64,000 nt of DNA from Lytechinus pictus (lineage: Eukaryota): contig NC_087245.1 of the NCBI RefSeq assembly GCF_037042905.1, forward strand, positions 38,440,001 through 38,504,000, written 5' to 3'. Shown here piece after piece: positions 334-29,233 of this stretch; position 1 is the stretch's first letter; the number at the start of each line of letters is the position of its first letter. A model generated the notes under the pieces. That model did not search any database and was not told the origin of the DNA. It saw only the letters and a list, made by a program, of their open reading frames with translations. Made by a program: the position numbers and the translations under genes.

Positions 334-1551
334 TTAATAACTCAATTTTTTTGAAACAGTTTTCCGGCATTCTTGTTTAGTTCTGACTTTTTGTGGTTTA
401 TGTGGGCACTCATTGTCAGATTTTCTGCTATTTCTTAATGGTGTCATTTCAATTTGTTTATTTTTATCCTCGGATGATTCGATTTCACTTACATTTAACT
501 CATTGGCTATGGTTAAAAGGCTACTGGGATGTTGAGAACTGTATTGATCCTCGTCACAACTTGAGTCATTAAAGTTTGGTGTGCCGGGATGGGTAGGACT
601 GCTCGATATATTTTTTCGACGCACTACCAAAAGGATTGCTATGATAGGTATTATTAGTATAATCAATGCTACTATAACCCCAAGAATAATAATTATGGTC
701 AACGATCTGGTACTAGTTTTCCCAGTTTTATAGTTCGTTGTAGCGTACTGGTCCCATCTGATAGCATCCGTATCAAGTTTAAAGACGTTTACTGTCGAAG
801 TTTCTGTAATAGGCCTACTTACTGCTATCTCCATACAAAGAGACACGTCAAGGTGATTTATAGTGTGATTTGCCAATTCGCTCGGGTATGAACATACTGG
901 ATTATCAAACCTGACGTATTTCTCGTTGCTTATGGATAGTTGATGATACCACTGACGCAATGGCTCCATGCTGCAGTCGCAATTCAAAGGATTGCCTTTC
1001 AGAAACAGAATTTTGGTGTTGTCTGTCAACACCTCCAAATTCAAATTGTCAAGTTGATGAAGTTTGTTCCATCTCAAATCTAAACGAATGTTCTGAAGAT
1101 AAAGAACATTGCCAATAGAAACCAAACTGTTTCCAGAGAGATTTATGTTCTTTAGGTAATCCATATGTGAAAAGAGATCAATGGATAGAGTTGTGAGAGA
1201 ATTGCTAGAAAGGTCCAGATTGACCAAGGATGAAAGGTCTTTGAAGATATCCTCAGGAAGATTAACCAGTTTGTTCATGCCGAGGAAAAGAAGCTCGAGT
1301 TTCTTTAAATGTTGGAAGACACCGGAAGTGAGTTGGGAAAGACGGTTCTGGTACAGGTCAATGACCTCGAGCTTTGGGACGAGTTGGAAGGTTCCGTTCT
1401 CGATGGCCCTCAGTGAGTTCCTACTCAAGTAGATGTTTTGGAGTCGGTTTTCTGTTCCGTTTAGTGCGTACCGATCGAACACCTGAAGATTGTTGTAGAG
1501 CAGCTTGATCGACTTGAGTTGAGGTGCCCCGATGAATGTATTTGCTTCGAT
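334..1551 (-). CDS. LRR transmembrane receptor copy 1, coding exon 2 (LRR2 end to LRRCT, S/T stalk, TM, cytoplasmic tail)
   Basis: Open frame with LxxLxLxxNxL repeats, NPLNCDC...CSYP...C LRRCT, hydrophobic TM IIIILGVIVALIILIIPIIAILLVV then RRK; acceptor tctttacag|ATC at 1552-1554, stop TAA 334-336; joins exon 3487-3774 in phase 0 (NISH|IEAN), giving about 501 aa. Confidence 0.93.
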   Translation of the reverse strand: MEANTFIGAPQLKSIKLLYNNLQVFDRYALNGTENRLQNIYLSRNSLRAIENGTFQLVPKLEVIDLYQNRLSQLTSGVFQHLKKLELLFLGMNKLVNLPEDIFKDLSSLVNLDLSSNSLTTLSIDLFSHMDYLKNINLSGNSLVSIGNVLYLQNIRLDLRWNKLHQLDNLNLEVLTDNTKILFLKGNPLNCDCSMEPLRQWYHQLSISNEKYVRFDNPVCSYPSELANHTINHLDVSLCMEIAVSRPITETSTVNVFKLDTDAIRWDQYATTNYKTGKTSTRSLTIIIILGVIVALIILIIPIIAILLVVRRKNISSSPTHPGTPNFNDSSCDEDQYSSQHPSSLLTIANELNVSEIESSEDKNKQIEMTPLRNSRKSDNECPHKPQKVRTKQECRKTVSKKLSY

Positions 1552-1984
1552 CTGTAAAGATAGAGTGAGACACATTTGTTCAAAATATATATGTATATAT
1601 GATTTTTATATAAAATAAAAGTGGCATGAAAGACTTTGTAACAAATAACACTATTGTGACGAAATTGCCTGGTTCGAACCAATACCAGAATTGAGTAGGT
1701 TTGAACAAACACTTGGCGCCTGAAAAAAATAATCAGATGGAGTCAAAGAGAAAATGTTAAAGAATAAAGAGAAGAGAAGATGGGAGATGGGTGAGAAGAG
1801 AGAGGGGGGAGGGAAGATGATGGAGGAGAGCATGGAGAGAGAGAAAGGGGGAGGAGGGAGAGAGATCATAATGTGAGCGTTTGCCATTAATCAATTAATT
1901 GGGGGAAATGGTTTCATTTACACAATCTAATACAAAATACAAAGTGGAATATAAGTTTTCAAGGAAAAAAAAACTAAAATAGGA

Positions 1985-2210
1985 ACACTCTTAAAATAGT
2001 TGGGCAAAATATGCCAACTTTTAACCAACCCTCGGCAACATACTGTCCATACAACTATTGGTTAAAATCTGCCTATATTGGGTAATATAAACTAATAATT
2101 GGGTAATAAATTTGCTCAATTTGATAATAATTGCCCAGAATATATAATATAATTTTTACTAACATACATTACCCAACACAGTGGACAGTATGTTGCCCAA
2201 CATTTTAAGT
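1985..2210. mobile_element. Palindromic MITE family (acactcttaaaa..ttgggca)
   Basis: Inverted arms ttgggcaa...ggcaacatactgtcca / tggacagtatgttgcccaac; related copies at 17603-17826, 35209-35435 and more distantly 55001-55200. Confidence 0.75.
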
Positions 2211-3486
2211 TTGTATGCTTATGAGATGTCAAAGTGGAATGAATTCACAAGATAATGCTAGTAGGCCTACACTTCAAATTTCACGTATTTTAAGTTTCTT
2301 TATGTATCCTCTGATCTCCTGTAAATAGTGACTATCAGAACTCTGGATCTAGATCCAAATCAATTTGAATTTAGATTTGAATATGAAATCTTTGTGATTT
2401 AGATATCACTAAAACTATCTGTAGTCAACTTTATTTTGAATCTCAGAATTTCATATCACAAAGATTTGATTTGGGATCAAGACCATAACACAAAATGTTG
2501 GCGATTAATCGCTAAGTGGTGATGGCCAATCCAGATCAATGTTACATTTGTGTTTTGTTCAAAACACTCACTAGAAACCAATCACAGGTGTCCTTTCATA
2601 TTTTGTATTCATCATAAACCCTTGTGTTACTGGGCCCTGATAAAGTAAGGGGAATACCCGGTCATTGTTAACGGTCGTTAATAATAACAATAATGACAGT
2701 TTCATTCTCATTGGTTGCAGTCATTTGAAACCATGCAGTCTCTCGGCGTTCATTGTTGTCTTATGATTAGTCAAATAACGAATGTATTTGAGATTGTTGT
2801 GTTCGAACCAAAAAGGAGTCTGGGTCAAAAAGAAAAATTCTGGTAAATATTTTTACCAACAATTTGGTCAGTTTTTAACAACATTTTGTAGGTTATTCTC
2901 CTGATTTTGTAGCCTCGCACTTCAGGAGAACTACCTGTAATTTTTGCCTATATTGTGTTTATTTTATTGGGGGGGGGCAAATTTCGTGGTAGAAAATTTG
3001 TAAAGAGAAAAAGTTACTTTTATCAGGTTTGTTGTCATTCTGTTGGCATAAATCATAAAATGACATGAACATAGAGCTGCATTTTGGAACCATGGTTTGA
3101 ATAGTCTTGTTATTTATAAGGATTTAATCGATCAGAAAGTTACATAGCACACATTCCATTTAAGTGTTTCCAGATTGGATTATAGCTACAAAATATCACA
3201 TTGTTTTCTGCGGATTACAATCCTATAAGATCAGATGTCATTTCAATATAAACTTATACAGTACAATACGTATCTTAATATGGATGAACGCTCACAATCA
3301 TACAACACAATCATATTTCAAAGTCCATATTTTAAAATGTTTGTTTTTTCCAAACTTATATCATGTAGATATAGGCCTACTTCGCCAAAGATTTAGAAAA
3401 GTCGAGGCACTATAAAATGCATGTTCCTACAAAACATTATACACTTTATAGTTATTCATTCTCTCTTATATAAAGTTTATACTTAC

Positions 3487-3774
3487 ATGTGAGATGTTGT
3501 TGTTTGACAGTAAGAGGTATTTTAGGAAATGAAAACCTCTAAAAATCTCAGGTCGTATTTTTGTGATGTGGTTGTAACGAAGCGATAGATATGAAGCAGC
3601 ATTGCATTCGATTGGTATGGTATCCAATGATCTGTGTTCACAGTTCGCCTGTTGTAAAGCCTCCACGTAAGAGCATTTACGATGACATGGCGAAGAACGT
3701 TGAGTTTCGGTGCTACGGCACATGAATAGTATGATCAAGATTAGTAAAAACTTTTTCAAAGATTGAACTTCCAT
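3487..3774 (-). CDS. LRR transmembrane receptor copy 1, coding exon 1 (signal peptide, LRRNT, LRR1-2)
   Basis: MEVQSLKKFLLILIILFMC signal peptide, CHRKC...C...LDTIP..C cap, LSLRYNHI and LLLSNNNISH; donor GTAAGT at 3486-3481. Confidence 0.92.
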
Positions 3775-4192
3775 TTTAGATATTTCTTGTCCTGAAAATA
3801 ACGATACGTATAAATTCAGCTTTCAAGAGCGTACAAACGCTTAGTTTGATGAAGCACGCTGTGTGTCAAGTAATTGAACTAATTCAAATCTCCCACTCTA
3901 GCACGATTAGTATACATATTCATTACAAGTACAATTCTGCCTGTCTTGTGATTGGCTGTAACCATGTGTCATTCATCTTGTGATCGGGGAAGTGGGAGGT
4001 AACTTTCTTGGGAACTCATTCACTTCGTAGACGAGCACATCATTAATCGTTATCATATTCAATTACATTTAAATCGTAACCGAAATTTGCAACGGTGAAG
4101 CAACCTTTGATTAAGCTTTAACGGTTTTTTCCCAAAGATTCCACACCTTACAAAATACACCCGAAAGCTCTTATTTCTTACTCTCTCAAGAG

Positions 4193-4455
4193 CATTAGCG
4201 GCGGAAGCCCCAAAATTTAGGGGGGTCCACCCGAAATTTTGTGATGGACACAGGTAAAAAATTAAAAAAATTGACAAGCAAAAAAAAAAGGTTATCAACC
4301 AAAATTTTAGGGGGGGGACGCAGGAAACAAAATTGACAAGCAAAAAAAAAAGTTATCAACAAAAAATTTAGGGGGGACCGTCCCCCCCCCCACCTCAAAT
4401 TTAGGGGGGACCTGTCCCCCCGTCCCCTCCCCCCCCCCCGCTTCCGCCGCCTATG
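4193..4455. mobile_element. hAT-like MITE with 8-bp TSD
   Basis: TIR cat(t)agcggcggaagc / gcttccgccgcctatg; TSD ctcaagag at 4185-4192 and 4456-4463; empty site in paralog at about 22973. Confidence 0.9.
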
Positions 4456-4922
4456 CTCAAGAGCATATTGATTGAAATAATGCATATATAGTTCAATCAT
4501 GGCGAAAGAAAATTGTTCAGTTTTCAGATAATTCGTTACTTGATCTATGCCACATTCTTCCAACATCATTAGAAAAGAAAAAAATAATGCATGTACGATT
4601 ACAAGAATAAAACTATAGCCCAGTTTGTCAGTATAGGCCTACTCTCTGTTGTCGTGATATTTTTGTGGTAATTGTTGATAATTCTAGTTCTATTCCGTCG
4701 TTTTGAAGAGAATAATTTTCCGATCATAATCCCGATTCAGAATTATGTGAACCAATAAAGATAAAATTCAGTATTATATCTCTTGGACCACAACATGGCG
4801 AACATCAAAAATTATGTAGTGGGGATAAATAGGTTCGATATTGTAATTTACTTTCTGTCGTTGCTGTTGATGATTACCTTCACCACTTTTCAGAAAATTG
4901 TAAAGAAACGGATACACCTTGT

Positions 4923-5164
4923 CACTAGCGTACCTACGGGGGGGGGGGGCACTCTGCCCCCCTGACGAGTCTCAACCCATGCAAAAACGTATCTTTGCCC
5001 CCCTGACGGGCTTGAAAAACCTTTTTTGCCCCCCCCCCTGACGAGCTTTAAGACCTTTAATGCCCCCCTGACGAGCTTGAAGACCTTTTTTTTTTTTTTT
5101 TGCTTGTAAATTTTTTTGGCGGACGGTTTTGCCCCCCCTGTGGAAAATCCTAGGTACGCCACTG
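4923..5164. mobile_element. hAT-like MITE with 8-bp TSD
   Basis: Ends cactagcgtaccta / taggtacgccactg; TSD caccttgt at 4915-4922 and 5165-5172; empty site at about 23425. Confidence 0.9.
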
Positions 5165-8100
5165 CACCTTGTGCCCCGCCAGAAACCCTGGGTCATCTGC
5201 TTAGAAAAAAGCAAAACTGGGTGTTGCATGAAGATAAATGAAAATATAAGAGCATATTACAAAATCCTCCCTGCTGCTCGCATGACTGGGAGTTCAATGT
5301 TTACAAACGATCATTATTTTTGGCGCAGAGCCAGATACGGTAACCATGGTAATTCCATAAATGAGTGCGTTCATTAATTCAGTCAAGGATTTACAGTTCA
5401 CATTTTCACACAATGGTTCGAAAAGCATCAAATCATGCCTGAAACAGGCTAATACCAGCTTCTATCGGCTCAAATAAAGCATTTAATGATTATCAACCCA
5501 TAAGAAAGGCGTGGTTACTTCGGGCAAAGGGTCATGCATGATCCAACTATTAATTGCAAGATGAAACCTCTCTGGTCTTACACTTTTTCTTTGACTCGGG
5601 CTCTAACTTCTCTCTTTGTTAAATGTAATGTTAGCTTTATTTTTACAATGTTGCTCAACTTAGTTATTAAAAGAGATTTTTATTTATATCAATTACATTA
5701 TTATCAATGATGAAAACAACAGTATGATAATAATAATAAAGGAAGTGAAATATAAGTGAGCATGTGCATGGTGGGAAAATGCCTAATGTATACATATTTT
5801 ATAACATGAATAATTGTTTGCCAGAGTTTTTCTTCATTTTCCGGAGTTTTTTGGTAAAGTTTTATGCAATGGGCCCCTGGTATATTCATACGCAGTAAGG
5901 CTGATTTACCTAAATCAGAAGTTTTCTCGTCATGGATTAGAAAGTTAAAGCTCCATGTTATCGTCATCATCATTATCGTCATCATCATCACCACCATCAT
6001 CGTCATCATTATCGTCATCATCATCAATCCCTTTATCATAAATATCAAAATTATTAGCATTCCTTTTGGCGGATTGAATAACATACCTCTTTGAAAAGTT
6101 GCATATAAAAAATTCCACTAGGATTAAAATCATAGTATTGTATTCTTCATTTATCAATTTTAATTGAAATTTCCTTGATTATCTCACTAAAAATAAGTAA
6201 TAATAATTAAAGAAATCGTTTAGACAGAAATATTGTATATTTAAGTTTTTATTTAAATAACACAACAAAATCACAATTTTTAAAGGATTTACAAGATTAA
6301 AACATAAAATCAAGGATCATACAAGTAAAAAAGAGAGCAGTTTAAAAATAAACAAGATAAATCTTTCAAAGATGAGACTCCGAGAACTACTTACGGATCT
6401 ACCTACTGAAAACAAATATCAAGAACTCAGATCTCTAAAAATGTTTGTTTCCTTATTGTGTTACTACTATTCCCTTAGGGGTGAATAGCTTAATAGAACA
6501 GAAAAAAAAACTTTCCCCATCCACCGTGCCATATACCAGGCATATACTTAGTAAACATGAGTAGGCTATATAAACGGGTCAGCAAGGTGAACTAGTATTG
6601 AATATCTAAAAGCAAGCTAAAATTCGACTTTAACACATTCACTGATGACTCGATTCGAACAGAGTGAAGTATAAATGTAAGTTTTCATGACATTTGCTCC
6701 GGCGACAATTGCTCCAATGGAAAATCTGCTCGTTAAGCCAAACATAAAAGCTTAACTCCAAAAACTAAATGAACCCTAATCCTTATAGTTCCATTGCTCT
6801 GAACCAAAAACTCTATTACTATCCTAAATGTACAATGCCCTCTAAAATATTAAGACCGGAGAAAATAGGCCTACAAAAATCCAACTGACCACTCATTGTT
6901 AGAATGTAACACCACTGGTCACTAAGGATGTATGGATGCATGCAGGTCTGTTTATACAATAACTATACTTGGTTTGAGAGGTGGATGCGGAGACCAATGA
7001 GGATGCGTGTGTGGACGTGTGGGTGTGTATGTGTGTGTCTGTACGTGGTATGAAATGATGTGTAAGAGTTTGTGTGTGGGTGTATGTGTGTGTGTGAAAT
7101 TGGGTGAAGATGTGTGTGTGTGTGGAGTGTGGTTGGTGAACAGGGATGTATTGTGTCAATATAGCTCGACTTGGCACCGGTATCAAATATTAATTCTAGA
7201 AAACCTAATATTTTTCAGTTAAAATCACGGCAATACATTTCAATTCCAATTTTAAAAATACATCAAAATGTCCATTTCGTTTTCATTCTGTAGTTATATG
7301 ACTATGAATAAATAATGCAATGAAAAACAGTCCAAAACGTCAATGAAAACAAAGTTTAGCAGAAATAATAACTGATAAAATCTCTTGATACTTTTGTTCG
7401 GACACGTTAGAGCAATAGTTTGTATTTTTTTTAAGTAAAAAGGTGAAATTTCACTACAAATTTGGAAAATTCTTTATATATCATGAAAATTTAGTAAACA
7501 TTCTTCTTTATACCTGATACTGCACTGTAAATTTATTCAACATAATGTCGACAGTTATGACAGTGTAACTTCAGCCAACAGGTTTTCAGCCTATCAAATG
7601 TTTTGAAGTCCATGTACGCCTTATGTTAAACATTTAAAATATAACATCCTATATAGTACAAAATATTCGCCAGCAATGAAATTACCGTTTCTTCCATATC
7701 ACTACATAATTATTTACACTAATGGAATTTTTTTGTGCCATGAGGGTATAGATTTGTGGATTAAATACTTTCATATTGCTTATTATTTTTCTGTATATAT
7801 TTATGTCTAATCTACTCCCAACCGTGCATACAAAAAAATATTTTCAAACAATATTATTGTGATATTTACAATTATACATTTATACAGAGAAAGGAAGGCG
7901 TGTATTCTCTGAAAGGCTTAAAAGGTATAAATACATTGCACATCATAATTGAAGGTGAAGAGAACATTGAAGAGTAATGATAGGAAAAGGCACTTGGAAG
8001 AAAGTAGAGAAGGCTGAATCACCCATAGACTAATTGCAACAAAATAAGATATTGGCAGGATTTTAGTTCCAATATATAAATACATGTATATTTACAACCG

Positions 8101-8270
8101 TGTTATACTGGAAATATTTTAACTAAAATAATAGTAGATGAAAGTTCAGCCACTGGGAAGTGTAATTATAACAAAATATCAATTGTGTTGTTGCGAGTTT
8201 ATTTTTAAAACACTTTGTATTCATATTTAAATATCCATTATGTATTGAGAACCACAAAATTGCAATCTGT

Positions 8271-8355
8271 TTAAGAGTCTAAATCGTTGAAAGAGTCGTT
8301 CAAATATCTCTAACACTTATTTATTTCGAGTTGTGTCCCATTTAAACGTTTGTTG
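8271..8355 (-). pseudogene. 3' remnant of a fifth LRR receptor gene (copy-4 type)
   Basis: Aligns to 27100-27184; translates NKRLNGTQLEINKC*RYLNDSFNDLDS* with in-frame TAG at 8312-8310; homology stops abruptly at 8355. Confidence 0.85.
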
Positions 8356-8625: not shown

Positions 8626-8812
8626 NNNNNNNNNNNNNNNNNNNNNNNNNNNNNNNNNNNNNNNNNNNNNNNNNNNNNNNNNNNNNNNNNNNNNNNNNNN
8701 NNNNNNNNNNNNNNNNNNNNNNNNNNNNNNNNNNNNNNNNNNNNNNNNNNNNNNNNNNNNNNNNNNNNNNNNNNNNNNNNNNNNNNNNNNNNNNNNNNNN
8801 NNNNNNNNNNNN
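8626..8812. other. Assembly gap (N run)
   Basis: 187 N bases. Confidence 1.
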
Positions 8813-8920
8813 GTGTATGTGTATATAAGAATAGAAAACTCAATTTTGTCCCCAACCTTTGAGGAGAGATTTCAGCTCTCCACTGAAAAAATCGTTCCCA
8901 GGGCCCTGATTACACCGCTA

Positions 8921-10138
8921 TTAAAAACTCAATTTTCTTCGTGTGCTTTCCCTGCTCTCTTGTTTAGTTCTGTCTTTTTGTGGTTTATTTGGACACTCAT
9001 TGTCAGAGTTACTGCTATTTCTTAATGGTGTCATTTCAATTGGTTCAGTTTTGTCCTCGGATGATTCGAGTACACTTAACCCGTTGCCCATGAATACAAG
9101 GCTATTAGGATCTTGTAAACTGAATTGGACCTCGTCACTCTTTGAGTTATTAGAGTCTGCTGTGCTTCGGTGGGGATTCTGGGGAGGACTGCCCGAATTG
9201 TTTTTTCGAAATACTACATAACAAATTACTATGATGATAGATACTAGTATAACCAGTGCTACTGCAACCCCAGGAATAATTTTAGACAATGATTTAGTAT
9301 TTGTTTTCCCAGTTTCATAGCTCGTTGTAACGTATTGGTCCGTTCCAATGTCATTCGTACCAAATTCAGCATTATAGACGCTTTCTTTCGATGTTTCTGT
9401 ACTGCTTACTGCTATCTCCACGCACAAAGACACATTGATGAAATTTATCGTGTAATTTGCCAATTCGCTCGGGTATGAACATACTGGATTATCAATCTTG
9501 ACGTCCTTCTCGTTGCTTATGGATAGTTGTTGATACCATTGACGCAATGGCTCCATGCTACAACCGCAATGCCACGGATTGCCTTTCAGAAACAGAATTT
9601 CGGCGTTGTCTGACAAGACCTCCAAAGACAAATTGTCAAGTTGATGTAGGTCGTTCCATCTCAAATCTAAACGAATATTCGGAAGATGAAGAACATTGCC
9701 AATAGAAACCAATCGGTTTCTAGAAAGATCAATGATCATTAGGTAATCCATATGTGCAAAGAGATCGCTGGAAAGAGTCGTCAGATAATTGTTGGACAGC
9801 TCTAGGTAGACCAAGGATGAAAGGTCTTTGAAGATATCCTCAGGAAGATTAACCAGTTTGTTCATGCCAAGGAACAGATGTTCGAGGTTCTTTAAATGTT
9901 GGAAGACACCGGAAGTGAGTTGAGAAAGGCGGTTCTGGTACAGGTCGATGACCTCGAGCTTTGGTACGAGTTGGAAGGTTCCGTTCTCGATGACTCTCAG
10001 TGAGTTCCTGCTCAAGTAGATGTTTCGGAGTCGGTTTCCTGTTCCGTTTAGCGCGTACCGATCGAACACCTGAAGATTATTGTTGAGTAGCTTGATTGAT
10101 TTGAGTTGGGGTGCCCCGATGAATGTATTTGCTTCAAT
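8921..10138 (-). CDS. LRR transmembrane receptor copy 2, coding exon 2
   Basis: Paralog of copy 1 exon 2; acceptor tctgtatag|ATT at 10139-10141, frame open to TAA at 8921; LRRCT NPWHCGC, TM IIPGVAVALVILVSIIIVICYVVF, tail ends RRKLSF. Confidence 0.93.
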   Translation of the reverse strand: MEANTFIGAPQLKSIKLLNNNLQVFDRYALNGTGNRLRNIYLSRNSLRVIENGTFQLVPKLEVIDLYQNRLSQLTSGVFQHLKNLEHLFLGMNKLVNLPEDIFKDLSSLVYLELSNNYLTTLSSDLFAHMDYLMIIDLSRNRLVSIGNVLHLPNIRLDLRWNDLHQLDNLSLEVLSDNAEILFLKGNPWHCGCSMEPLRQWYQQLSISNEKDVKIDNPVCSYPSELANYTINFINVSLCVEIAVSSTETSKESVYNAEFGTNDIGTDQYVTTSYETGKTNTKSLSKIIPGVAVALVILVSIIIVICYVVFRKNNSGSPPQNPHRSTADSNNSKSDEVQFSLQDPNSLVFMGNGLSVLESSEDKTEPIEMTPLRNSSNSDNECPNKPQKDRTKQESRESTRRKLSF

Positions 10139-11670: not shown

Positions 11671-11675
11671 GAAAC

Positions 11676-11802: not shown

Positions 11803-12081
11803 ATGTGAAATGTTGTTGTTTGATAGTAAGAGGTATTTTAGGAAAGGAAACCCTCTAAAAACACCAGGTCGTATTCTTGTGATGTGGTTGTAACGAAGCG
11901 ATAGATACGAAGCAGCATTGCATTCGATTGGTATAGTATCCAATGATCTGTATTCACAGTTCGCCTGTTGAGAAGCCTCAACGTATGAACATTTACGATG
12001 ACATGGCGAAGAACGTTGAGTTTCGGTGCTACGGCACATGAAAAGTATTAGTAAAAACTTATTCAAAGATTGAACCTCCAT
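11803..12081 (-). CDS. LRR transmembrane receptor copy 2, coding exon 1
   Basis: MEVQSLNKFLLILFMC...LLLSNNNISH, 93 codons, donor GTAAGT at 11802-11797; spliced product about 498 aa. Confidence 0.92.
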
Positions 12082-15859: not shown

Positions 15860-16987
15860 TCAGCAGATAGATTCTGAAGGTATAAAGTTGAGTTTTTTGC
15901 TACACCTTTCAACATTTTTTTCTTTGTTCAGAATTTCTTTCTCTGGTGTTAACATTTTGCCTCCATGAGACGTATTGTCGAATTGTTCGCGAGGCTTTAA
16001 AGGTATGCTTACATTTAGCTCATCACTGCCTGTTTCATCCGAATGTCTCTTTCGAAACTTTATCACAATGATTACTATAACCACAATCAGAATGGTAAAT
16101 GCTACTACAACTCCAACGATCACAATCAATAATTTATCATCTCTTTTTCCACTTTCAGCTCTCTCTGTGACAGAATCTTGGTACTTTGATACGTTCTTGT
16201 CAATTCCAACATTATCATTATTATGGAATTCATTGTTAGAAGTCAAGGGAAGGGAAGTTGATGTAGAAGTGCACAAAGATACGTTAAGGTAATTGATAGT
16301 GTGATCTGCTAATTCGCTCGGGTACGAACACACTGGATCATCAATCTTGACGTCCTTATTGTTGCTTATGGATAGTTGTTGAAACCATTGACGCAATGGC
16401 TCCATACTACAGTCGCAAAGCCAAGGATTGTCTTTCAGAAACAGAATTTCGGCGTTACTTGTCAAGATCTCCAAGGTCAAATTGTCAAGTTGATGAAGTT
16501 TGTTCCATCTTAAATCCAAACGAATATTCGGAAGATGAAGAACATTGCCAATAGAAATCAATCGATTACCAGAGAGATCAATGGTCATTAGGTAATCCAT
16601 ATGTGCAAAAACATTAATGTAAAGAGTTGTGAGAGAATTGTTGGACAGGTCTAAGTAGACCAAGGAAGATAGGTCTTTGAAGACATCCTCAGGAAGATCA
16701 ACCAGTTTGTTCATGCCGAGGAAAAGACGCTCGAGGTTTTTTAAATGTTGGAAGACACCGGAAGTGAGTTGAGAAAGACGGTTCTGGTACAGATCAATAA
16801 CTTCCAGCTTTGGTACGAGTTGGAAGGTTCCGTTCTCGATGACTCTAAGTGAGTTCCTACTCAAGTAGATGTTTCGGAGTCGGTTTTCTGTTCCGTTTAG
16901 TGCGTACCGATCGAACACCTGAAGATTGTTGTAGAGCAGTTTGATAGACTTAAGTTGAGGTGCCCCGATGAATGCATTTGCTTCGAT
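15860..16987 (-). CDS. LRR transmembrane receptor copy 3, coding exon 2
   Basis: Acceptor tctttacag|ATC at 16988-16990; IEANAFIGAPQ... LRRs, NPWLCDC LRRCT, different stalk, TM LLIVIVGVVVAFTILIVVIVIIVI, tail ends KKLNFIPSESIC. Confidence 0.93.
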   Translation of the reverse strand: MEANAFIGAPQLKSIKLLYNNLQVFDRYALNGTENRLRNIYLSRNSLRVIENGTFQLVPKLEVIDLYQNRLSQLTSGVFQHLKNLERLFLGMNKLVDLPEDVFKDLSSLVYLDLSNNSLTTLYINVFAHMDYLMTIDLSGNRLISIGNVLHLPNIRLDLRWNKLHQLDNLTLEILTSNAEILFLKDNPWLCDCSMEPLRQWFQQLSISNNKDVKIDDPVCSYPSELADHTINYLNVSLCTSTSTSLPLTSNNEFHNNDNVGIDKNVSKYQDSVTERAESGKRDDKLLIVIVGVVVAFTILIVVIVIIVIKFRKRHSDETGSDELNVSIPLKPREQFDNTSHGGKMLTPEKEILNKEKNVERCSKKLNFIPSESIC

Positions 16988-17160
16988 CTGTAAAGATAGA
17001 ATGATATACTATTTGTTCAAAACACATGTATAAAATACAACTGACATGAGAGACTTTGTAACAACTTACATAATTGCCTGTTGTAGTTAATTTTGTAACA
17101 AAATTACCGGGTTCGAACCAATAACAAAATTGAGTAGGTTGGAAAAAAACACTTGGCGCC

Positions 17161-17961: not shown

Positions 17962-19371
17962 CAGGGGCGGAAATCCCAGGGGGGACGTGTCCCCCCTACT
18001 CAAAATAGTAGGGTGGACACAATATCAAATGTCCCCCTACTATTTGTGGTCTTTTACGATGGTAAGATATACATCATTCAAAATCGAAATAAAACATGTA
18101 TTTCAGGACGAGATGGCCTTACTTTTGGGATGATTTTTTGTTTGCTTGTCAAACTTTTTGTTGTGCAGAGGTCAGCAGGTCAAAATAGGGAACTTAGTCT
18201 CGAATGTTCGTGTCACCAGCACTGGTGTACCACAGGGCTGCGTACTATCCCCAGTGCTTTTTTCAGTTTATACAAATGACTGTGTATGCGCAGGTGACAA
18301 CTGTGTAATGATAAAATACGCGGACGACACAGTCATAACGGGGTATATCCGATCGAACGATAATGCCGACTCTTACTTTTCAACTATTCAACGGTTCGTT
18401 GATTGGTGCGATAACCACCATTTACAACTAAATGTAGCCAAAACGAAAGAAATGGTGATACATTTTCATAAGAACACCCATATAGATCACGTGCCCCTTT
18501 GTATCAAGGGCACTGCTGTCGAGCAGGTTAGTGAGTATAAATACCTTGGCACTACCTTATCATCTAAGTTAGACTGGTCAAGTAATGTTAGTGTTATACA
18601 GAAGAAATGTAACCAAAGGCTCTTTTTCCTCAGACAACTAAGGAAAATACGTGTTGATAGCACTCTCCTTGTCTTGTTTTACAAGTCAATTGTTCAGTCA
18701 ATCTTAATATTTAATTTCATTTGTTTCTTTGGTAATTTGACATCTGCTAGCAAGAAAAGACTAGAAAGAATAAGGAAAACTGCTCAACGTATCATCGGGA
18801 AAGAATTGCCAAGCATTGAAGATACATATGTTGATCGAGTCCTCCTGAAGACCCTACACACCCCTTTTTTATTTATTACAACTACAATCGATCGGGAATT
18901 CGTTTGTGCGTCCCTCGCACTAAGCGAAGTCGATATAGATTCTCATTTGTACCAGACTCAATTCACATATTTAACAGTAGGGCAAGATGAGGTCAAACTG
19001 CCTTGTAGGCTGATGTATCTTAGATGGGAGGGGTTGGGGATCAGTCCCCTGGGAACAGCATGTTACTTATTTAATTCATGTTTATATAACCATTAAAATA
19101 TTTATTTAGTCATAACGCCATTTTGCTGTTATATACTGTCAATTATCATTTATTGGTATACATTGTATTTGTTTTTGTAAATTTGTTGGTAACCAGCGAG
19201 CACCAAATTTCCATTTGATTGGACAATAAATGAATTCAATTCAATTCAATTCAAATTTATTTTCGTCGAAATGACTTTAAATCTTAAATTTGGGGTGATA
19301 ACTTCTTTTTTTGCTCGTCAAATTTTCCAGCCTCTTGTCCCCCTACCTTTTGGGATAAATTTCCGCCCCTG
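17962..19371. mobile_element. hAT-like MITE carrying a nested LINE
   Basis: TIR caggggcggaaat / atttccgcccctg; TSD tttagacc at 17954-17961 and 19372-19379; empty site at about 2348. Confidence 0.88.
18149..19253 (+). mobile_element. 5'-truncated non-LTR retrotransposon (Rex1/Babar-like), RT C-terminal part
   Basis: GVPQGCVLSPVLF, KYADDT, LNVAKTKEM, YKYLG, QRLFFLRQL; frameshift near 18855-18870 with true end RSGIRLCVPRTKRSRYRFSFVPDSIHIFN; AATAAA then (AATTC)n tail; clade is an inference from motif style. Confidence 0.88.
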
Positions 19372-20278: not shown

Positions 20279-22075
20279 TTACCTTGCCTCCCTTTATGGC
20301 CATGCGTTTTGAGTTGGGCCCATTTCCGTTATAACTCAAATTTTCCTCCAAACTCGCATCGTTTCATACAATTGTATTTGTTCTTATGTTTTACATCCTA
20401 TACTTATACCCATAAAAATATATATATTCTGAAAGAAAATTGTCTGAGGAATTCAAAAATGCAATCAGAAAAGGCACAGGGTAATGTCTTTAAAAGTTAG
20501 AGGTAAAAATATGTGGAAAACTGTGAAAAAATATACTTCCCAATATACCTTATGAGAAAAACTTTACACTCCATAGGAAAATAACATGCATATTTCAACT
20601 CTTGAGAGTGAGACTTTTCCAATGATATATCACTTGTTAGGGATAACTCTAACCAAAATAATTGCGCAATCATCTTTTAAGACAAAATTTCACATCACAA
20701 TTGTTTTGGTACATATGTAAAAATGTCTGATTTACCCCCAAATTATGTAGTCTTGCCTTTAGTTGCATGAATATACTTGCAAACACTAACAATTATATTA
20801 TAATATATTTACTGTGGTTATTATGAATAAAATATGATTTGACTCAAATCGTGAGATTTGTCATCTCTTGGCTCAAAGACCGGTGGACGAAAGGTTGACA
20901 ACTGAGAGTCAGGTTTAACATACACGCAAATGTAGGAAAAATGTGAAAGTACAATGAAAAATTCTCAGAAGTGCTTTAGCTTAAACTTGGTGTGAGCAAA
21001 AACAACTAACATATTATAAATAAATTCATTTATCTTACAGCTGGCAAAATTACTTCGATTGTGTTATTTTATAGTGTTATGTTTTAAATATACCCTCTTG
21101 CTCGACATTCTGCAGGACATGGTATCTTGGTACTGGGTCAATTGAATGTCAATGCCAATACAAAAGGCATTCTATGGGTACAATTGAATTGCCTCTGTTT
21201 TAGTGTAATATCAGTGTCGTTCTCAAGTAGTTTTTTGATAAATGGGAAAATATTCACTGAACACCTTTGTGCCAGCCAAATAAGTGTCGTCAAATTGTAA
21301 TGTGTCACCTACTGATTCATAAACGCAATGTAATGTAACATTAAGAAAAAAGAATAAATGACATTAGATGAGGGCTTTATTGCTACAAACAAGTTTTCAG
21401 CAATCACAATTGCATAAAAGGTGCACTGGCTATTTGTTGTTACCAGAATAATCTGAAGATTCGGACACATGAAAGTCATCATTGTCAGTCTACACTCTCA
21501 AAATTGAAACCATGATGTCATAATTAACAATAGATTGATTTCTCTCTTAAGTCTTTAATTTTAATTTGTGCTTTTAAAATTTTTGCAGCTTCTAAATTTT
21601 GTTGAAGGTGTAACCCACATCTAGGCCCTATATTTTATCTCTCCTCATTTTCTTTACATCAGACAGTACTATTTTCATTCGTGGTAATTTCATGATTTAC
21701 ATCAATTAATTATAGTAATTAGCTTAATTAGGTATCTTTTGAACTTCAGTTCAAATTTGACTCACTTATCATTAAAAAATAAGCCAGGGAGCCCCAAAAC
21801 TATTACATATTTAGGTACTGTGATGTTATATATTAAGTTTCTTAATGAAATAAAGATTCATGCTCCCCTCGTCTACCACCATGCAAAACTGGCCAATTGA
21901 TTTAAATAATTGGTAAATACTGGTTAATGAAGTAATGTCAGATCTTTAAAGTAATTGGTATGAAGATTCCCTTTGATGTGATACCAAATGTAGCACATGT
22001 TTTTAAAGTTTTATACCATTCTGTGCTTGTCGCGCAAATGTAACGAACACAACGCATGGTGTTAAACAGTTAATG
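20279..22075. mobile_element. About 1.8-kb insertion in copy 3 intron, probable non-autonomous DNA transposon
   Basis: Absent from paralogous intron (about 3245-3280); degenerate inverted ends ccatgcgtt / aacgcatgg, right end at TTAA; no ORF. Confidence 0.55.
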
Positions 22076-22269
22076 GGGATGAACGCTCACAATCATACAA
22101 CACAATCATATTTCAAAGTCCATATTTTAAAATGTTTGTTTCCAATCTTATATGATGTAGGCATACTTCGCCAATGAATTATACAAGTCGAGGCACTATA
22201 TACTGCACGTATCTACAAAACATTATACCCTTCACATTCATTTTCTCTTATACCAAGGTTAATACTTAC

Positions 22270-22557
22270 ATGTGAGATGTTGTTGTTTGATAGTAAGAGG
22301 TATTTCAGGAAAGGAAAACCTCTAAAAATCTCAGGTCGTATTTTTGCGATGTTATTGTAACGGAGCGATAGATACGAAGCAGCATTGCATTCGATTGGTA
22401 TAGTATCCAATGATCTGTATTCACAGTTCGCCTGCTGAAAAGCCTCGACGTAAGAGCATTTACGATGACATGGCGAAGAACGTTGAGTTTCGGTGCCACG
22501 GCACATGAATAGTATGATCAAGACTTGAAAAAACTTATTAAAAGATTGAACTTCCAT
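22270..22557 (-). CDS. LRR transmembrane receptor copy 3, coding exon 1
   Basis: MEVQSFNKFFQVLIILFMC...LLLSNNNISH, 96 codons, donor GTAAGT at 22269-22264; intron 16988-22269 expanded by TE insertions; product about 471 aa. Confidence 0.92.
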
Positions 22558-24361
22558 TTTAGATATTTCTTGTCCTGAAAATAACGATACGTAGAAATTC
22601 AGCTTTCAAGAGCGTACAAACGCTTAGTTTGATGAAGCAAGCTGTGTGTCAAGCAATTGAATTAACTCAAATCTCCCACTCTTGCATGATTAGTATACAT
22701 ATTCATTACAAGTACGATTCTGTATGTCTTGTGATTGGCTGTAACTATGCGTCATTCATCTTGTGATCGGGAAGTGGGAGGTAACTTTCTTGATGCTCAT
22801 TCACTAATTCGTAGAGGGGCAAATATCATTAATCGCTATAATATATTCATTTACATTTAAATCGTAACCGAAATTCGCAAAGGTGAAGCAGCGCTTTGAT
22901 GAAGCTTTAACGGTTTTTTCCAAAGATTCCACACCTTACAAAATAAACCCGAAAGCTCTCATTTCTTATTCTCTCAAGAGCATATTGATTGAAATAATGC
23001 ATTTATAGTTCTATCATGGTGAAAGAAAATTGTTTAGTTTCAGATAATTCGTTACTTGATCTATGCCACATTCTTCCAACACCATTAGGAAAGAAAAAAA
23101 AATACATGTACGATTAATACAATAAAACTATACCCTAGTTTGTCAGTATAGGCCTACTCTCTGTTATCGTGATATTTTGTTGGTAATTATTGATAATTCT
23201 AGTTCTATTCCGTCATTTTGAAGAGAATAATTTTGCGATCATAATCCCGATTCAGAATTATGTGAACCAATAAAGTTTAGTATTATATCTCTTGGACCAC
23301 AACATGGCGAACATTAAAAATTATGGAGTGGGGATAAATAGGTTCGATATTGTAAATTTACTTTCTGTCGTTGCTGTTGATGATTACCTTCACCACTTTT
23401 CAGAAAATTGTAATGAAACGGATACACCTTGTGCCCCGCCAGAAACCCTGGGTCATCTGCTTAGAAAAAAGCAAAACTGGGTGTTGCATGAAGATAAATG
23501 AAAATATAAGAGCATATTACAAAATCCTCCCTGCTGCTCGCATGACTGGGAGTTCAATGTTCACAAACGATCATTATTTTTGGCGCAGAGCCAGATACGG
23601 TAACGGGACGGTAACCATGGTAATTCCATAAATGAGTAAGTTCATTCGTTCAGTAAAGGGTTTACAGTTCATATTTTCACACAATGGTTCGAAAAGCATC
23701 AAATCATGTCTGAAACAGGCTAATACCAGCTTCTATCGGCTCAAATAAAGCATTTAATAATTATCAACCCATAAGAAAGGCGTGGTTACTTCGGGCAAAG
23801 GGTCATGATCCAACTATCAATTGCAAAATGAAACCTTTCTGGTCTTACACTTTTTCTCTGACTCGGGCTCTAAATTCTCTCTTTGTTAAATGTAATGCTA
23901 GCTTTATTTTCACAATGTTGCTCAACTTAGTTATTAAAAGAGATTTTTATTTATATCAATTACATTATTATCAATTATGAAAACAACAGTATGGTAATAA
24001 TAATAAAGGAAGGGAAATATAAGTGAGCATGTGCATGATGGGAAAATGCCTAATGTATACAAATCTTATACCATGAATAATCCTTTCGAAACGTAGTAGT
24101 ATCATTATAATATTAAAACTAAATAACAATAGTGTCATTTTGTCGTATAAATATAAGAATAAAAAAAATTATCCATCCCAAGAAAGGAATTACGGGGCAG
24201 TAATAATTGTTGGTACTATATATGTACTTGGTAATGTATGTCATTTTGATATAATTATGAATATTAAAATAAATTATTCGCATTGCATCAGCGCCGTTCT
24301 CATGATTTGGGAGCTCACAGCCTACTAGCCCACGGCGCAGAATTTTGAACTTCGCGTTCTT

Positions 24362-24498
24362 CTGGGGCCCGTTGCATAAAACTTTTGCCATAACGAACTC
24401 TTTTTAATATGTAATTTTCAATGGCATAATTTTTGCCAGTTTTTTTTTTTCATTTTCCAGATTTTTATTGGCAAAAGTTTTATGCAACGGGCCCCTGG
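24362..24498. mobile_element. Palindromic MITE (gggcccgtt..cataaa type)
   Basis: ggggcccgttgcataaaactttt / aaaagttttatgcaacgggcccc; only the right arm survives in paralog at about 5820-5880. Confidence 0.75.
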
Positions 24499-27099
24499 TA
24501 TATTCATACGCAGTAAGGCTGATTTACCTAAATCAGAAGTTTCCTCGTCATGGATTAGAAAGTTAAAGCTCTTTGTTATCGTTCTCATCATTATCGTCAT
24601 CATCATCATCATCACCACCACCATCATCGTCATCACCACCCTCATCATTATCATCATTCCCTTTATCATAAATATCAAAATCATTAGCATTCCTTTTGGC
24701 GGATAGAATAACATACCTCTTTGAAAAGTTGCATATAAAAAGTTTTAAAATTCCACTAGGATTAAAATCATAGTATTGTATTTTTATTTATCAATTTCAA
24801 TTGATATTTCCTTGATTATCTAACTAAAAATAAGGAATAATAATAAAAGAAATCGTTTAGACAGAAGTTTTGTATATTTAAGTTTTTATTCAAAAAACAC
24901 AACAAAAATTACAATATTTATTAAGGATTTACAAGATCAAAACATAAAATCAAGGAACATACAAGAAAAAAAGGGCAGTTTAAAAGTAAACAAGATAAAA
25001 CTTTCAAATGAGACTCCGAGACGGAATTACTTACGGATCTACCTACTGAAAAAAATTATTAAGAACTCAGATCTCTAAAAATATATTTTTATCCTTATCG
25101 TGTTACTACTATTCCTTTAGGGGTGAATAGCTTAATAGAACAGAAAAAAACTTTCCCCTCCCACCGTGCCATATACCAGGCATATACTTATTTCTACTTC
25201 ACTTACTTTTACTTTTATCCAACGATGCTTATTGTAGGACTGTCACTATGCCTGTTCATCGGTCCTAGGGAATAAACTGTATGCTCCACACTATCAGTTT
25301 CAATTAGTTGCATGTGGCAAGATATAAAATCCATTACTCAAAGTCATACACAAAAGCAATATCCTTAAACATAATAGTAGGCTATATAAAAAGGTCAGCA
25401 AGGCGATCTAGTATTGAATATCTTATAGTAAGCTAAAATGCAACTTTAACACATTCACTGATGACTCGAATCGAACAGGGTAAAGTATAAATGCAAGGTT
25501 TCATGACATTTACTCCGGCGACAATTGCTCCAATGGAAAATCTGCTCGTAAAACATAAAAGCCTAACTCCAAAAACTAAATAAACCCTCATCCTTATAGT
25601 TACATCGTTCTGAACCAAAAACTCTATTACTATCCTAAATGTACAATGCCCTCTAAAATATTAAGGCCGGAGAAAATAGACCTACAAAAATCCAACTGAC
25701 CACTCATTGTTAGAATGTAACACCACTTGTCACTAAGGATGGATGGATGCATGCAGGTCTGTTTATACAATAACTATACTTGGTTTGAGAGGTGGATGCG
25801 GGGACCAATGAGGATGTGTGTGTGGACGTGCGGGTGTGTATGTGTGTGTCTGTACGTGGTATGAAAGGATGTGTAAGAGTTTGTGTGTGGGTGTATGTGT
25901 GTGTGAAATTGGGTGAGGATGTGTGTGTGTGTGGAGTGTATGGTGTGGTTGGTGAACAGGGATGTATTGTGTCAATATAGCTCGACTTGGCACCGGTATA
26001 AAATATTAATTATAGAAAACCTAATATTTTTCAGTTAAAATCACAGCAATACATTTCAATTCCAATTTAAAAAATACATAAAAATGTCCATTATTATGAC
26101 ATGTAAAACATTTTATTTTCATTCTGTAGTTATATGACTATAAATAAATAATGCAATGAAAAACAGTCCAAAACGTCAATGAAAACAAAGTTTTGCAGAA
26201 ATAATAACTGATAAAATCTCTTGATACTTTTGTTGGGACACGTTAGAGCAATAGTTTGTATTTTTTTTAAGTAAAAAGGTGAAATTTCACTACAAATTTG
26301 GAAAATTCTTTATATCATGAAAATTTAGTAAACATTCTTCTTTATACCTGATACTGCACTGTAAATTTATTCAACATAATGTCGACAGTTATGACAGTAT
26401 AACTTCAGCCAACAGGTTTTCAGCCTATCAAATGTTTTGAAGTCCATGTACGCCTTATCTTAAACATTTCAAATATATGATATGATAATATAATACAATC
26501 CTATATAGTACAAAATATTCACCAGCAATGAAATAACTGTTTTTTCCATATCACTACATATTTATTTAAACTAATGACATTTTTGTGCCATTGGGGTATA
26601 GATTTGTGGATTAAATACTTTCATATTGCTTATTATTTTTCTGTATACATTTATGTCTAATCTACTCCCAACCGTGCATACAAAAAAATATTTTCAAACA
26701 ATATTATTGTGATATTTACAATATTATTATACATTTATACAGAGAACGGAAGGCGTGTATTCTCTGAAAGGCTACATTGCACATCATAATTGAAGGTGAA
26801 GAGAACATTGAAGAGTAATGATGAGAAAAGGGACTTGGTAGAAAGTAGAGAAGGCTGAATCACCCATAGACTTATTGCAACAAAATAAGATATTGGCAGG
26901 ATATTAGTTACAATGTATAAATACATGTATATTTACAACCGTGTTATACTGGAAACATTTTAACTGAAATAATAGTAGATGAAGGTTCCGCCCCTAGGAA
27001 CAGTGTAATGATAACAAAATATCAATTGTGTTGTGGCGACACCTTGTATTCATATTTAAATATCCATTATGTATTGAGAACCACCAAACTGATATCTGT

Positions 27100-28245
27100 T
27101 TAAGAGTCTGAATCGTCGAAAAAGCAGTTCAAATTTCTCTTACACTTGTTTATTTCGAGTTGTGTCCCACTTAAACGTTTGTTGCTTTTCTTTGAAGGTG
27201 TGGTTGGTGGGTTGGGTCTTTGGGACGGGAACTTACTTGGGGTGCTATCCCCACGATCACAGTGCACTTTTATGGCAGGTTCTTTAAAAGGCACTACAGG
27301 TTGTTCATTGTTTGAATTTCGAAAAGGTAAGGCATTATTTATTTTTCTAAGAGCTCTGAGCGAATAATAAACGTAGGCAAAAAGAATACACAAAGGCACC
27401 AAAACCACAAATACGTAATATGAGGAGCTCGGTATTACACTAATATTGTCATCTCGTCGCGTTATATACGAATTATTTTTATTATTTGGCTTTTTATCGT
27501 CAGTTAGATTCCTAACCATGATAACCTTGTTTTGAAGATCCTGACATGTCTGATTGATGAACCCTTTCATAGGATGGCTAGTTAGATCACTAGGACTGGT
27601 ACAGACTGGAGAATCGATGATGTTACAGAATGGGGACACTCGGAGACATCCTGAACGAAAAGGCTGTAAAGAACAATCACACACCCATGGATTACCCTCT
27701 AAGTACAACATCTCAACATGACTGAACCAGGTTTCATTGCCGAGATGCTGTAACCCGTTCTCACGTAAATCCAACCTCTCAATATGTGGAAGAGAAAAAA
27801 CATTGCCATGAATGTCCATCAACCTGTTCCCAGACAAATCAAGTTTTCTCAATTCTAACAGATTGATAAAATGGTTGGATTCAACGGTTTCTAACAAATT
27901 GTCCGATAAATCTAAGAAGATCAACGATGACTCGTCCATGAATATGTCTCTGGGTAGAGTCACTAGTTTGTTCATGCGGAGGTTAAGATATGTAAGATTC
28001 CATAAATGTTGGAAGGTGGTATTGCTTAAGTTAACAAGGTAATTCCACGAAAGATCGATGCGCCTTAGTGCCGGTGCTTGTTGAAATGTTGTCTCTTCTA
28101 CAGCTACCAGGTAGTTCCGTCCAAGGTAGATGTTCTGGAGGTTATCTGAGCCATTGAGTGCAAACTGGCTTAAGGTATTTATGTTGTTATACATCAAGTC
28201 TATGGTCTCCAGTTGTGGTGCTCCAGTAAAAGTGTTTGCACTTAC
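27100..28245 (-). CDS. LRR transmembrane receptor copy 4 (divergent paralog), coding exon 2
   Basis: Acceptor ccttttcgtag|GTA at 28246-28248; VSANTFTGAPQLETIDLMYNN aligns to IEANTFIGAPQLKSIKLLYNN; LRRCT NPWVCDC...VCTSP...C; TM YYVFVVLVPLCILFAYVYY; stop TAA 27100. Confidence 0.9.
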   Translation of the reverse strand, partial: VSANTFTGAPQLETIDLMYNNINTLSQFALNGSDNLQNIYLGRNYLVAVEETTFQQAPALRRIDLSWNYLVNLSNTTFQHLWNLTYLNLRMNKLVTLPRDIFMDESSLIFLDLSDNLLETVESNHFINLLELRKLDLSGNRLMDIHGNVFSLPHIERLDLRENGLQHLGNETWFSHVEMLYLEGNPWVCDCSLQPFRSGCLRVSPFCNIIDSPVCTSPSDLTSHPMKGFINQTCQDLQNKVIMVRNLTDDKKPNNKNNSYITRRDDNISVIPSSSYYVFVVLVPLCILFAYVYYSLRALRKINNALPFRNSNNEQPVVPFKEPAIKVHCDRGDSTPSKFPSQRPNPPTTPSKKSNKRLSGTQLEINKCKRNLNCFFDDSDS

Positions 28246-28915
28246 CTACGAAAAGGACAATAAAATAATACAAAAACAGTCATATTTTCACTGCAAATGG
28301 ACAGGGCAGGTAGACATACTTAGTCCACCGTGTTTAGTTAACACATGGCTTAACGTAATCCCGGTATAGCTTTAGTCCCCTTTTGTGAATTCGGGCCACT
28401 AGTATAAAAAATAGATGTATTGAATTTCAATTGATTTACTCAATATCTTTCATATCTCGGACTTCGACAAAGCTAATTATCACGTATGACATATCAATTT
28501 GACGTAAATATTAAAATTAAAATTATCAAAACTTCTGTGAGCTTTAATCTTTCATTACAATAACTGTTTGACTTACAGTATGTCAGTAACAATCTAAAGC
28601 CTCAAGTCTCTGTAATTGCATGTATCACATTAACGTAATGAGCTGAAATGTAGAGGGGCAGACAAATGGGGTAGGGGGAAGTTTCTAAAATGTTGCGAGC
28701 GAAGCGAGCGAGTACATTTTTTGAAATCTTTTCAAAACAAAAAATAATTTGTCTAAACTATACACAAACATTTCTTTGTGAGTTGTGGGGGTAATTAAAA
28801 TTGCATCACGAAATGCATGTATTTGTTTTAAAGCCACATTGTATGAACCTTATTTTGCTAAAATAATTTTGCCTTGTTTAACTTCTTGATGTCGTATGAT
28901 TTAGTTTGAACTTAC

Positions 28916-29233
28916 TTTGGATATCTGGTTATGAGATAGAACGAGCTTCGTCAATAATGTAAAGCCTACAAATGTAGCTGGTGTTAGCTCGGTAATCAAA
29001 CGTTCACGAAGCGACAGGTTCCTCACTTGCTTGCATCCATTAGGAATAGATATCGGAAGTGTCTCCCTACAGTTTGGAATCTGGTGGAGGTACGAACACT
29101 CCTCAGCCCACGTCAGCAGTATCCCATTTGAAAACAAGAGAAGTATAAGCAATACTCTGGTCAGGATAGTCAATGAAAACTCAGCAAATGTAGCCCTGTA
29201 CATCGTCATGATTTCTGGAATATTTTTGTCCAT
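28916..29233 (-). CDS. LRR transmembrane receptor copy 4, coding exon 1 (start codon uncertain: 29233, 29209 or 29203)
   Basis: Hydrophobic leader VLLILLLFSNGILLTWA, shortened Cys cap, LSLRERLI and LVLSHNQISK; donor GTAAGT at 28915-28910, same LRR position and phase as the other copies. Confidence 0.82.

Follow-up and report, generated by a model that had tools for sequence, protein, structure and literature searches.

Do four tandem genes for leucine-rich repeat (LRR) membrane proteins in the sea urchin Lytechinus pictus encode a rapidly diversifying recognition system, or do they form an ordinary family of adhesion and receptor proteins? The genes, termed g1 to g4, lie on the minus strand of the window, a 64,000-nucleotide (nt) stretch of L. 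pictus chromosome sequence (C1:38440001-38504000; assembly size 812 Mb). A sequence-only reading of this stretch had taken them for a rapidly turning-over recognition family organised like paired receptors. The comparisons presented here favour an ordinary lineage-specific family of adhesion/receptor type, not a paired or diversifying immune receptor system. It is probable that the genes represent a sea-urchin-specific family of type I membrane glycoproteins that would act as conserved-ligand receptors or adhesion proteins, in a cluster made mosaic by duplication and gene conversion.

Gene models were drawn from an open reading frame (ORF) listing and splice-site reading, and give two exons per gene (Table 1) and proteins of 501 (g1), 498 (g2), 471 (g3) and 487 amino acids (g4, counted from the first ATG). 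In all four genes the donor GTAAGT directly follows ...NNNISH (HNQISK in g4), a pyrimidine-rich CAG or TAG acceptor directly precedes IEANTF/VSANTF, and the intron is in phase 0 at the same residue of LRR2, with lengths of 1935, 1664, 5282 and 670 nt in g1 to g4. Each protein has a signal peptide (judged by eye from the hydrophobic N-terminus), a disulfide-capped horseshoe made up of an LRRNT, about 10 typical LRRs and an LRRCT, a disordered stalk rich in Ser/Thr (~45 residues), one transmembrane (TM) helix and a disordered cytoplasmic tail of 60-95 residues; the LRRs of g2 start at residues 57, 81, 105, 130, 154, 178, 202, 226, ~249 and ~272. LRR families are the only Pfam matches, both in each of the exons and in the complete g2 protein. 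An AlphaFold2 model computed from a 15-sequence family alignment predicts a capped solenoid at residues ~25-333 (predicted local distance difference test mostly >90) and a TM helix at 381-407, with disorder in the stalk between them (335-378) and in the tail that follows (409-498), and the LRRCT cysteines C284, C286, C313 and C332 are invariant or nearly so. The top Foldseek matches in the PDB are Nogo receptor, Nogo receptor 2, NGL-3 (TMt 0.86, root-mean-square deviation 2.4), LRRTM2, chondroadherin and LGR4. These Pfam, cysteine, model and fold results place the family in the LRR-only class of extracellular LRR (eLRR) type I membrane proteins. Pfam detects no TIR domain in any exon or in the database copy of g2 (P0001), and two local sea-urchin TIRs, used as tblastn queries over the 114 kb that surround the cluster, have no significant match (best E 0.6). 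When read directly, the TM cores contain no K, R, D or E, and the tails contain no YxxL/I pair and neither an immunoreceptor tyrosine-based activation motif (ITAM) nor the inhibitory counterpart (ITIM; [ILV]xYxx[ILV]). The sequence-only description of four same-strand genes of this layout, with a single phase-0 intron at a common point of LRR2, and with no TIR, Ig or FN3 domain, ITAM/ITIM motif or charged TM residue, is thereby borne out by ORFs, splice sites, Pfam, tblastn, the model and direct reading.

The local cluster has six members, because two further copies, g0 and gm2, lie just outside the window. Their tails fall into types A (g2, g0), A' (g1), B (g3, gm2) and C (g4), to which a P0004 type is added from a protein of an older L. 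pictus annotation. Copies 2 and 3 had been described as having near-identical LRR domains joined to unrelated stalks, TM helices and tails, and the tails of the cluster as interchangeable. Identity between these LRR domains is lower than that wording implies (~86% in DNA, ~90% in protein), and the tails are diverged homologues, variants of one tail. Direct BLASTP between the g2 and g3 stalk/TM/tail regions is non-significant (E=2.6), which explains the earlier word "unrelated", yet both match P0004 along the stalk, the TM helix and the entire tail (E=2e-12 and 2e-7). A multiple alignment of eleven L. pictus and Strongylocentrotus purpuratus tails follows one plan: the stalk, acidic and Thr-rich, borders the membrane, and after the TM helix, (I/V)I.GV.VAF..., come a juxtamembrane basic (K/R)(F)RK, S(S/D)E(D/E) as an acidic serine cluster, TPL(K/R), often LTPxK, and C(S/R)K(K/N)LxF near the C-terminus. 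From the juxtamembrane patch to the acidic cluster, type B tails are ~45 residues shorter, and the g4 tail has weaker versions of the motifs (TPSK, CKRNLNCF).

Evolutionary constraint bears most directly on the question of function. Nonsynonymous and synonymous divergence (dN, dS and their ratio omega) was estimated by the Nei-Gojobori method. For the mature ectodomains of g1, g2, g3 and gm2, leaving aside the g3-gm2 pair, dS is 0.27-0.35, dN about 0.06 and omega 0.16-0.25; a ratio of about 0.2 indicates that the ectodomain is under purifying selection. Tail omega is 0.5-0.95 overall, with 0.70 (dS 0.41) between the g1 and g2 tails, and ~0.5-0.6 (dS ~1.0-1.2) between A and B tails, which align poorly. 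In a set of six L. pictus sequences, concave xxLxLxx positions are no richer in variable sites (13/50) than other non-core positions (34/125; Fisher p=1.0). A comparison of gm2 with P0008 of S. purpuratus gives 84% identity and no indel over the 311 residues of the mature ectodomain, and ~33% identity in the stalk/TM/tail. A conserved ectodomain with diverging tails fits a conserved ligand and argues against an arms-race receptor. Were this instead a rapidly diversifying immune or allorecognition family, with one ectodomain offered on alternative signalling tails in the manner of paired receptors, a tandem multigene cluster with copy differences between assemblies would be expected ground, as would tails that differ sharply between copies with similar ectodomains, and S. 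purpuratus also has at least two tail types. Such an origin appears very unlikely, however, when set against the low ectodomain omega, the even spread of variable sites between concave and other non-core positions, the indel-free identity between species, the homology and common motifs of the tails, and the lack of ITAM, ITIM, charged TM residue or TIR; every evolutionary test run disfavours it. Of the sequence-only reading, tandem duplication and the TIR-less nature of the genes stand, and rapid turnover and pairing are not supported (omega 0.16-0.25, p=1, 84%).

The history of the cluster is written in the distribution of identity along its members. In blastn comparisons, g1 and g3 share 88-94% identity over a stretch that starts 2.7 kb or more upstream (3805-6500 in g1, 22588-25142 in g3), takes in exon 1 and the intron and reaches the end of the LRRCT; their homology then stops abruptly at the LRRCT/stalk junction (g1 841, g3 16277). 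DNA similarity between g2 and g3 stops at nearly the same place (9422/16271), and g1 and g2 share 81% DNA identity through the entire exon 2, tail included. Upstream, the similarity of g2 to g1 and g3 ends ~31 nt 5' of its ATG (12112 and upstream), so that the g2 promoter region is probably different. Sliding identity of g2 to g0 is 82-83% in LRR3-6 and 96-98% in the tail; that of g1 to g0 is 92-98% in LRR6-9 and 63-78% in the tail. Maximum chi-square tests on informative sites give p<=0.0005 in five of the five triplets tried and place the breakpoints close to alignment columns 250-290 and 690-765; the second of these coincides with the LRRCT/stalk junction. A copy of the g4 3' end lies beyond the assembly gap 3' of g2, and within it 8355-8271 (85 nt) is a relic of the last 28 g4-type codons with a premature stop; this relic marks the upper edge of a segmental duplication. 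The source block (16277-27184) comprises the g4 tail end, the intergenic region and the g3 5' part, and its lower edge is again the LRRCT/stalk junction.

These patterns indicate that segmental duplication and gene conversion have made the genes mosaics, and that this accounts for the sharp drop of identity at the LRRCT/stalk junction. On this evidence g1 combines a g3-like 5' part with a g2-like tail, and g0 combines diverged or g1-like LRRs with a g2-like tail. Tandem or segmental duplication, together with non-allelic gene conversion or unequal crossing-over, keeps the 5' flank, intron and LRR part similar between copies, and conversion tracts end where the older, diverged stalk/TM/tail regions lose homology, leaving mosaic genes. 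Fast evolution of stalk, TM helix and tail under relaxed constraint after whole-gene duplications, with no recombination at all, might be proposed in its place from the tail omega of 0.5-0.95, the predicted disorder of the tail and the low identity (~33%) of L. pictus and S. purpuratus tails. We consider this highly improbable. The neutral intron and flank sequences of g1 and g3 are ~90% identical and the adjoining tails have no blastn similarity whatever, so the tails must have an older history than the 5' parts, which points to gene conversion or unequal crossing-over and not simply to relaxed constraint. The nearest relative of g0 also switches, from g1 in LRR6-9 to g2 (97%) in the tail, and both the chi-square results and the g4-tail relic at the duplication edge speak for recombination.

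Copy number in the cluster may depend in part on the assembly. The gap (a run of N) begins 109 nt 3' of the g2 stop codon (8921-8923), and a 749-nt RNA-like contig from run X1 covers 8813-9512 and continues past the gap edge; since the gap falls in the g2 3' untranslated region (UTR) or downstream of it, no reading frame depends on it. The g2-g1 neighbourhood is as assembled, with this gap between the two genes. The fifth copy, g0 (C1:38414719-38416774; window -23226..-25284), has an A-type tail and a 1-nt frameshift in LRR7, and may be either a young pseudogene or an assembly error at the frameshift. The sixth, gm2 (XP_063961786.1; window -30713..-37990), is 97-100% identical to g3 almost throughout, with dS of 0.055-0.075, a value inside the range expected for sea-urchin alleles. 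Two family proteins of the older L. pictus annotation, P0004 (XP_054760571.1) and P0005 (XP_054760641.1), are absent from the present assembly; a search of that assembly for a P0004-type tail found no close counterpart (best 36% identity), which suggests a difference in copy content between haplotypes or assemblies, although a P0004-type gene may also lie in unassembled sequence or be hidden in the gap. The gap directly 3' of g2, the allele-like g3-gm2 distance and the single frameshift in g0 could together mean that part of the cluster is an artefact in which haplotigs or a mis-join of scaffolds across the gap inflate the copy number. That explanation is unlikely for the cluster as described: dS of at least 0.27 and different tails among g1, g2, g3 and g4 mean that these copies are not alleles, the order g3, g2 ... 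g0, gm2 is unlike a simple tandem haplotig repeat, and tandem copies also occur in S. purpuratus and probably in Diadema.

Transcription has been observed for g2 at least. Spliced g2 matches P0001 (XP_063961795.1, "LRRC15-like") at 100%, and P0007 (XP_063960676.1) corresponds to g3 beginning at Met18. Read-level checking of transcription covered g2, whose splice joint 10138|11803 occurs in RNA-like contigs of two runs (X1, X5) from two studies, with 1664 nt skipped between GT..AG borders on the minus strand. The contigs cover the exons and not the intron, and one runs through the stop codon into the 3' UTR. No other joint was seen in the g2 contigs, which rules out splicing to a downstream TIR exon in those samples; the sequence-only reading had named such splicing, or a lack of expression, as outcomes that would speak against it, and neither was found for g2. 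Literature searches on sea-urchin LRR-only TM families and on L. pictus immune genes turned up nothing on the g1-g4 family. Another gene named "LRRC15-like", LOC121417626 of Lytechinus variegatus, heads the list of transcripts enriched in secondary relative to primary spines (PMC11574069). By its LOC number it seems to adjoin a discoidin/TSP gene, and no F5_F8_type_C match occurs near the cluster on its chromosome, so that LOC121417626 is, judged by synteny, probably a different LRR gene.

Close members of the family are confined in the L. pictus genome to this one cluster of six loci, within which g4 is ~50% identical to the others. A distant member, L008 (C1:24032326-24036015; C1:24033826), lies 14 Mb away on the same chromosome and is 39% identical; its phase-0 intron falls at the same position (…|VQANSF), and its layout is one of LRRs, a TM helix and a short, basic tail. 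In S. purpuratus there is at least one tandem pair, on AAGJ06000007.1, with several partly fused gene models (P0002, P0003, P0008, P0031), and P0009 (XP_011662447.2) groups with g4 (support 100/100; 47% identity, E=2e-78). Diadema setosum has four proteins with consecutive accessions, the same architecture and 41-45% identity. In a maximum likelihood tree of the exon-2 ectodomain most clades are confined to one species: the Diadema clade has support of 100/100, the S. purpuratus main-type clade is weak (83/74, drawn as an open fork) and the L. pictus main-type copies have no resolved grouping; this topology is compatible with lineage-specific duplication, concerted evolution or both. The best matches outside echinoids are at most 34% identical and have mixed names. 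A REPRESENTATIVE-library search was dominated by giant multi-LRR proteins, and useful relatives came only from S. purpuratus and Diadema.

If a conserved-ligand family is the right interpretation, the solenoid would act at the cell surface by binding a protein ligand that is conserved and probably endogenous, in a mode of action resembling that of the Nogo receptor/NGL/LRRTM adhesion and receptor class. The tail has no catalytic or death-fold domain, so output would depend either on a co-receptor or on short motifs retained by every tail type; candidates are the juxtamembrane basic patch, S[SD]E[DE], the proline-directed TPL[K/R] and C[S/R]K[K/N]LxF. A search of the ESM Atlas with the stalk/TM/tail returned generic type I proteins (neurexin/syndecan C-termini, opalin, TMEM154) at scores of at most 0.80, which are leads only and not evidence. 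Several points weigh against the interpretation as a whole. The database protein search returned nothing corresponding to g1 or g4, for which the argument for function comes from intact ORFs and an omega of ~0.23. Two deep RNA-seq runs from 2026, of each of which ~6% was read, held essentially no g2 reads, and expression of g2 must therefore be restricted or low. The A-versus-B tail dS of ~1 depends on a poor alignment, the g3/gm2 pair may reflect a haplotig kept in the assembly and not a genuine duplication, and the functions proposed for the tail motifs are read from sequence only.

A bolder proposal is that the LRRCT/stalk junction is a recurrent recombination boundary that re-couples one ectodomain to the old A, A', B, P0004 and C tail modules, so that the same ligand would be served by different trafficking or signalling outputs and copy content would vary between haplotypes. 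We regard it as quite unlikely; if true, the family would be the echinoid equivalent of paired receptors, with short linear motifs in place of ITAM/ITIM. The conserved-ligand interpretation overturns no current ideas and removes one candidate from the possible novel immune-receptor systems. It adds an undescribed family of eLRR membrane proteins, found only in echinoids and only under automatic names, in which the ectodomain is unusually conserved and the tails are free to diverge. The cluster also illustrates cleanly how segmental duplication and gene conversion produce mosaic genes, and the genetic tractability of L. pictus opens the family to direct testing.

Table 1. Positions of the LRR genes and associated features in the window.
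Feature	Position	Strand	Details
g1 exon 1	3774..3487	-	ATG, signal peptide, LRRNT, LRR1, first half of LRR2; donor GTAAGT, phase 0; Pfam LRR_8
g1 exon 2	1551..334	-	LRR2 (second half) to LRR10, LRRCT, stalk, TM, A'-type tail, stop included; acceptor TTTACAG; Pfam LRR only
g2 exon 1	12081..11803	-	ORF and splice site; covered by RNA-like contigs
g2 exon 2	10138..8921	-	A-type tail, stop included; joint to exon 1 in runs X1 and X5
g3 exon 1	22557..22270	-	ORF and splice site
g3 exon 2	16987..15860	-	B-type tail (~45 aa shorter), stop included
g4 exon 1	29233..28916	-	Divergent subfamily; three early Met codons as candidate starts
g4 exon 2	28245..27100	-	C-type tail; groups with S. purpuratus P0009
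Assembly gap (N run)	8626..8812		Within or just past g2 3' UTR; outside all coding sequences
Copy of g4 3' end and downstream flank	7000..8355	-	blastn 90% over 1408 nt to 27184-25811
Duplicated block	841..8355	-	g4-tail relic, intergenic region, g1 5' part; blastn 88-94% to 16277-27184
Retroelement reverse-transcriptase fragment	18146..19096	+	Within the 5.3 kb g3 intron; RVT_1 E=3e-15

Beyond the LRR genes, the window holds an ORF at 33808-34305 (minus strand) that ends in an FKBP_C segment (E=3.5e-4) followed by a hydrophobic, TM-like stretch; a membrane-anchored FKBP gene adjoining the cluster probably has its last exon here. At 38026-39810 (minus strand) there is a 594-aa ORF with RVT_1 (E=2e-37) of a retroelement of the long interspersed nuclear element type, in a region of strong GC skew. 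A long, strand-asymmetric low-complexity tract at 60812-61708 (GC skew 0.34, AT skew 0.37) is Ser/Leu/Phe/Pro-rich when read on one strand and Lys/Glu/Arg/Gly-rich on the other, and is probably a simple repeat and no gene.

Comparison with known systems clarifies what the family is likely to be. Sea-urchin Toll-like receptors (TLRs) likewise have an LRR ectodomain and a single TM helix and are also tandemly expanded in echinoids. The L. pictus TLRs L012 and L013, however, are single intronless ORFs of 880-900 aa with a TIR, whereas this family has a phase-0 intron, about 10 LRRs and no TIR, and TLR ectodomains are 29-36% identical to it over partial lengths. Paired activating/inhibitory receptors were also considered and rejected: there is no charged TM residue and no ITIM or ITAM, the tails are homologous variants, and no activating/inhibitory dichotomy is seen. 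LRRC15, IGFALS and GP5 have typical LRRs with cysteine caps, and LRRC15 is also a type I membrane protein with a short tail, but their LRRs number 15-20, compared with about 10 in this family, their sequence scores are sums of repeat matches and their tails are dissimilar. The best PDB matches by sequence (IGFALS, 3.7e-65; LGR4; LRRC15, 2.4e-36; a TIR-domain protein; TLR3; LRRTM; RTN4RL2) are generic typical-LRR similarity and not orthology. The same holds for the RefSeq name "LRRC15-like": orthology to LRRC15 was rejected, with ~10 rather than ~15 LRRs and with LRRC15 behind IGFALS and LGR4 among the PDB matches. One-to-one orthology to a known single-copy LRR gene, which the sequence-only reading had offered as a counter-argument to itself, is thus not found for LRRC15, and matches from outside echinoids do not exceed 34% identity.

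GPIb-alpha and agnathan variable lymphocyte receptors (VLRs), to which the layout had been likened in preference to TLRs, resemble the family in having a small LRR solenoid that is capped and borne on a stalk rich in Ser/Thr. GPIb-alpha, however, has a long mucin stalk and a tail that binds filamin and 14-3-3, and neither feature is seen here. VLR genes are somatically assembled from cassettes and their products are linked to glycosylphosphatidylinositol (GPI), whereas the genes described here are complete germline two-exon ORFs with a TM helix; membership of the VLRs is rejected by the identity of spliced g2 mRNA to the genomic exons, by these germline ORFs and by the predicted helix. Neither GPIb-alpha nor VLR occurs within the top 50 Foldseek matches. 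The best Foldseek matches are those to the Nogo receptor (RTN4R/RTN4RL), NGL/LRRC4 and LRRTM proteins (E ~1e-15, TMt 0.74-0.86), which likewise form a horseshoe of an LRRNT, ~9-10 typical LRRs and an LRRCT, and LRRTMs are also type I TM proteins with LRRs as their only domains and a short tail. Identity to these groups is only 23-29%, with no orthology shown, and unlike them the family was found only in echinoids in the searches made. The Nogo receptor is GPI-anchored where this family has a TM helix; NGLs carry an added Ig domain that this family lacks; and LRRTM and NGL tails end in PDZ-binding motifs, whereas the C-termini here (...KKLSY, ...RKLSF, ...IPSESIC, ...DDSDS) have no ECEV- or ETQI-type ending. 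The distinction from TLRs therefore stands, and the nearest folds are those of Nogo receptor, NGL-3, LRRTM2 and chondroadherin instead of GPIb-alpha or VLR, all six of which belong to one class of capped extracellular LRR module.

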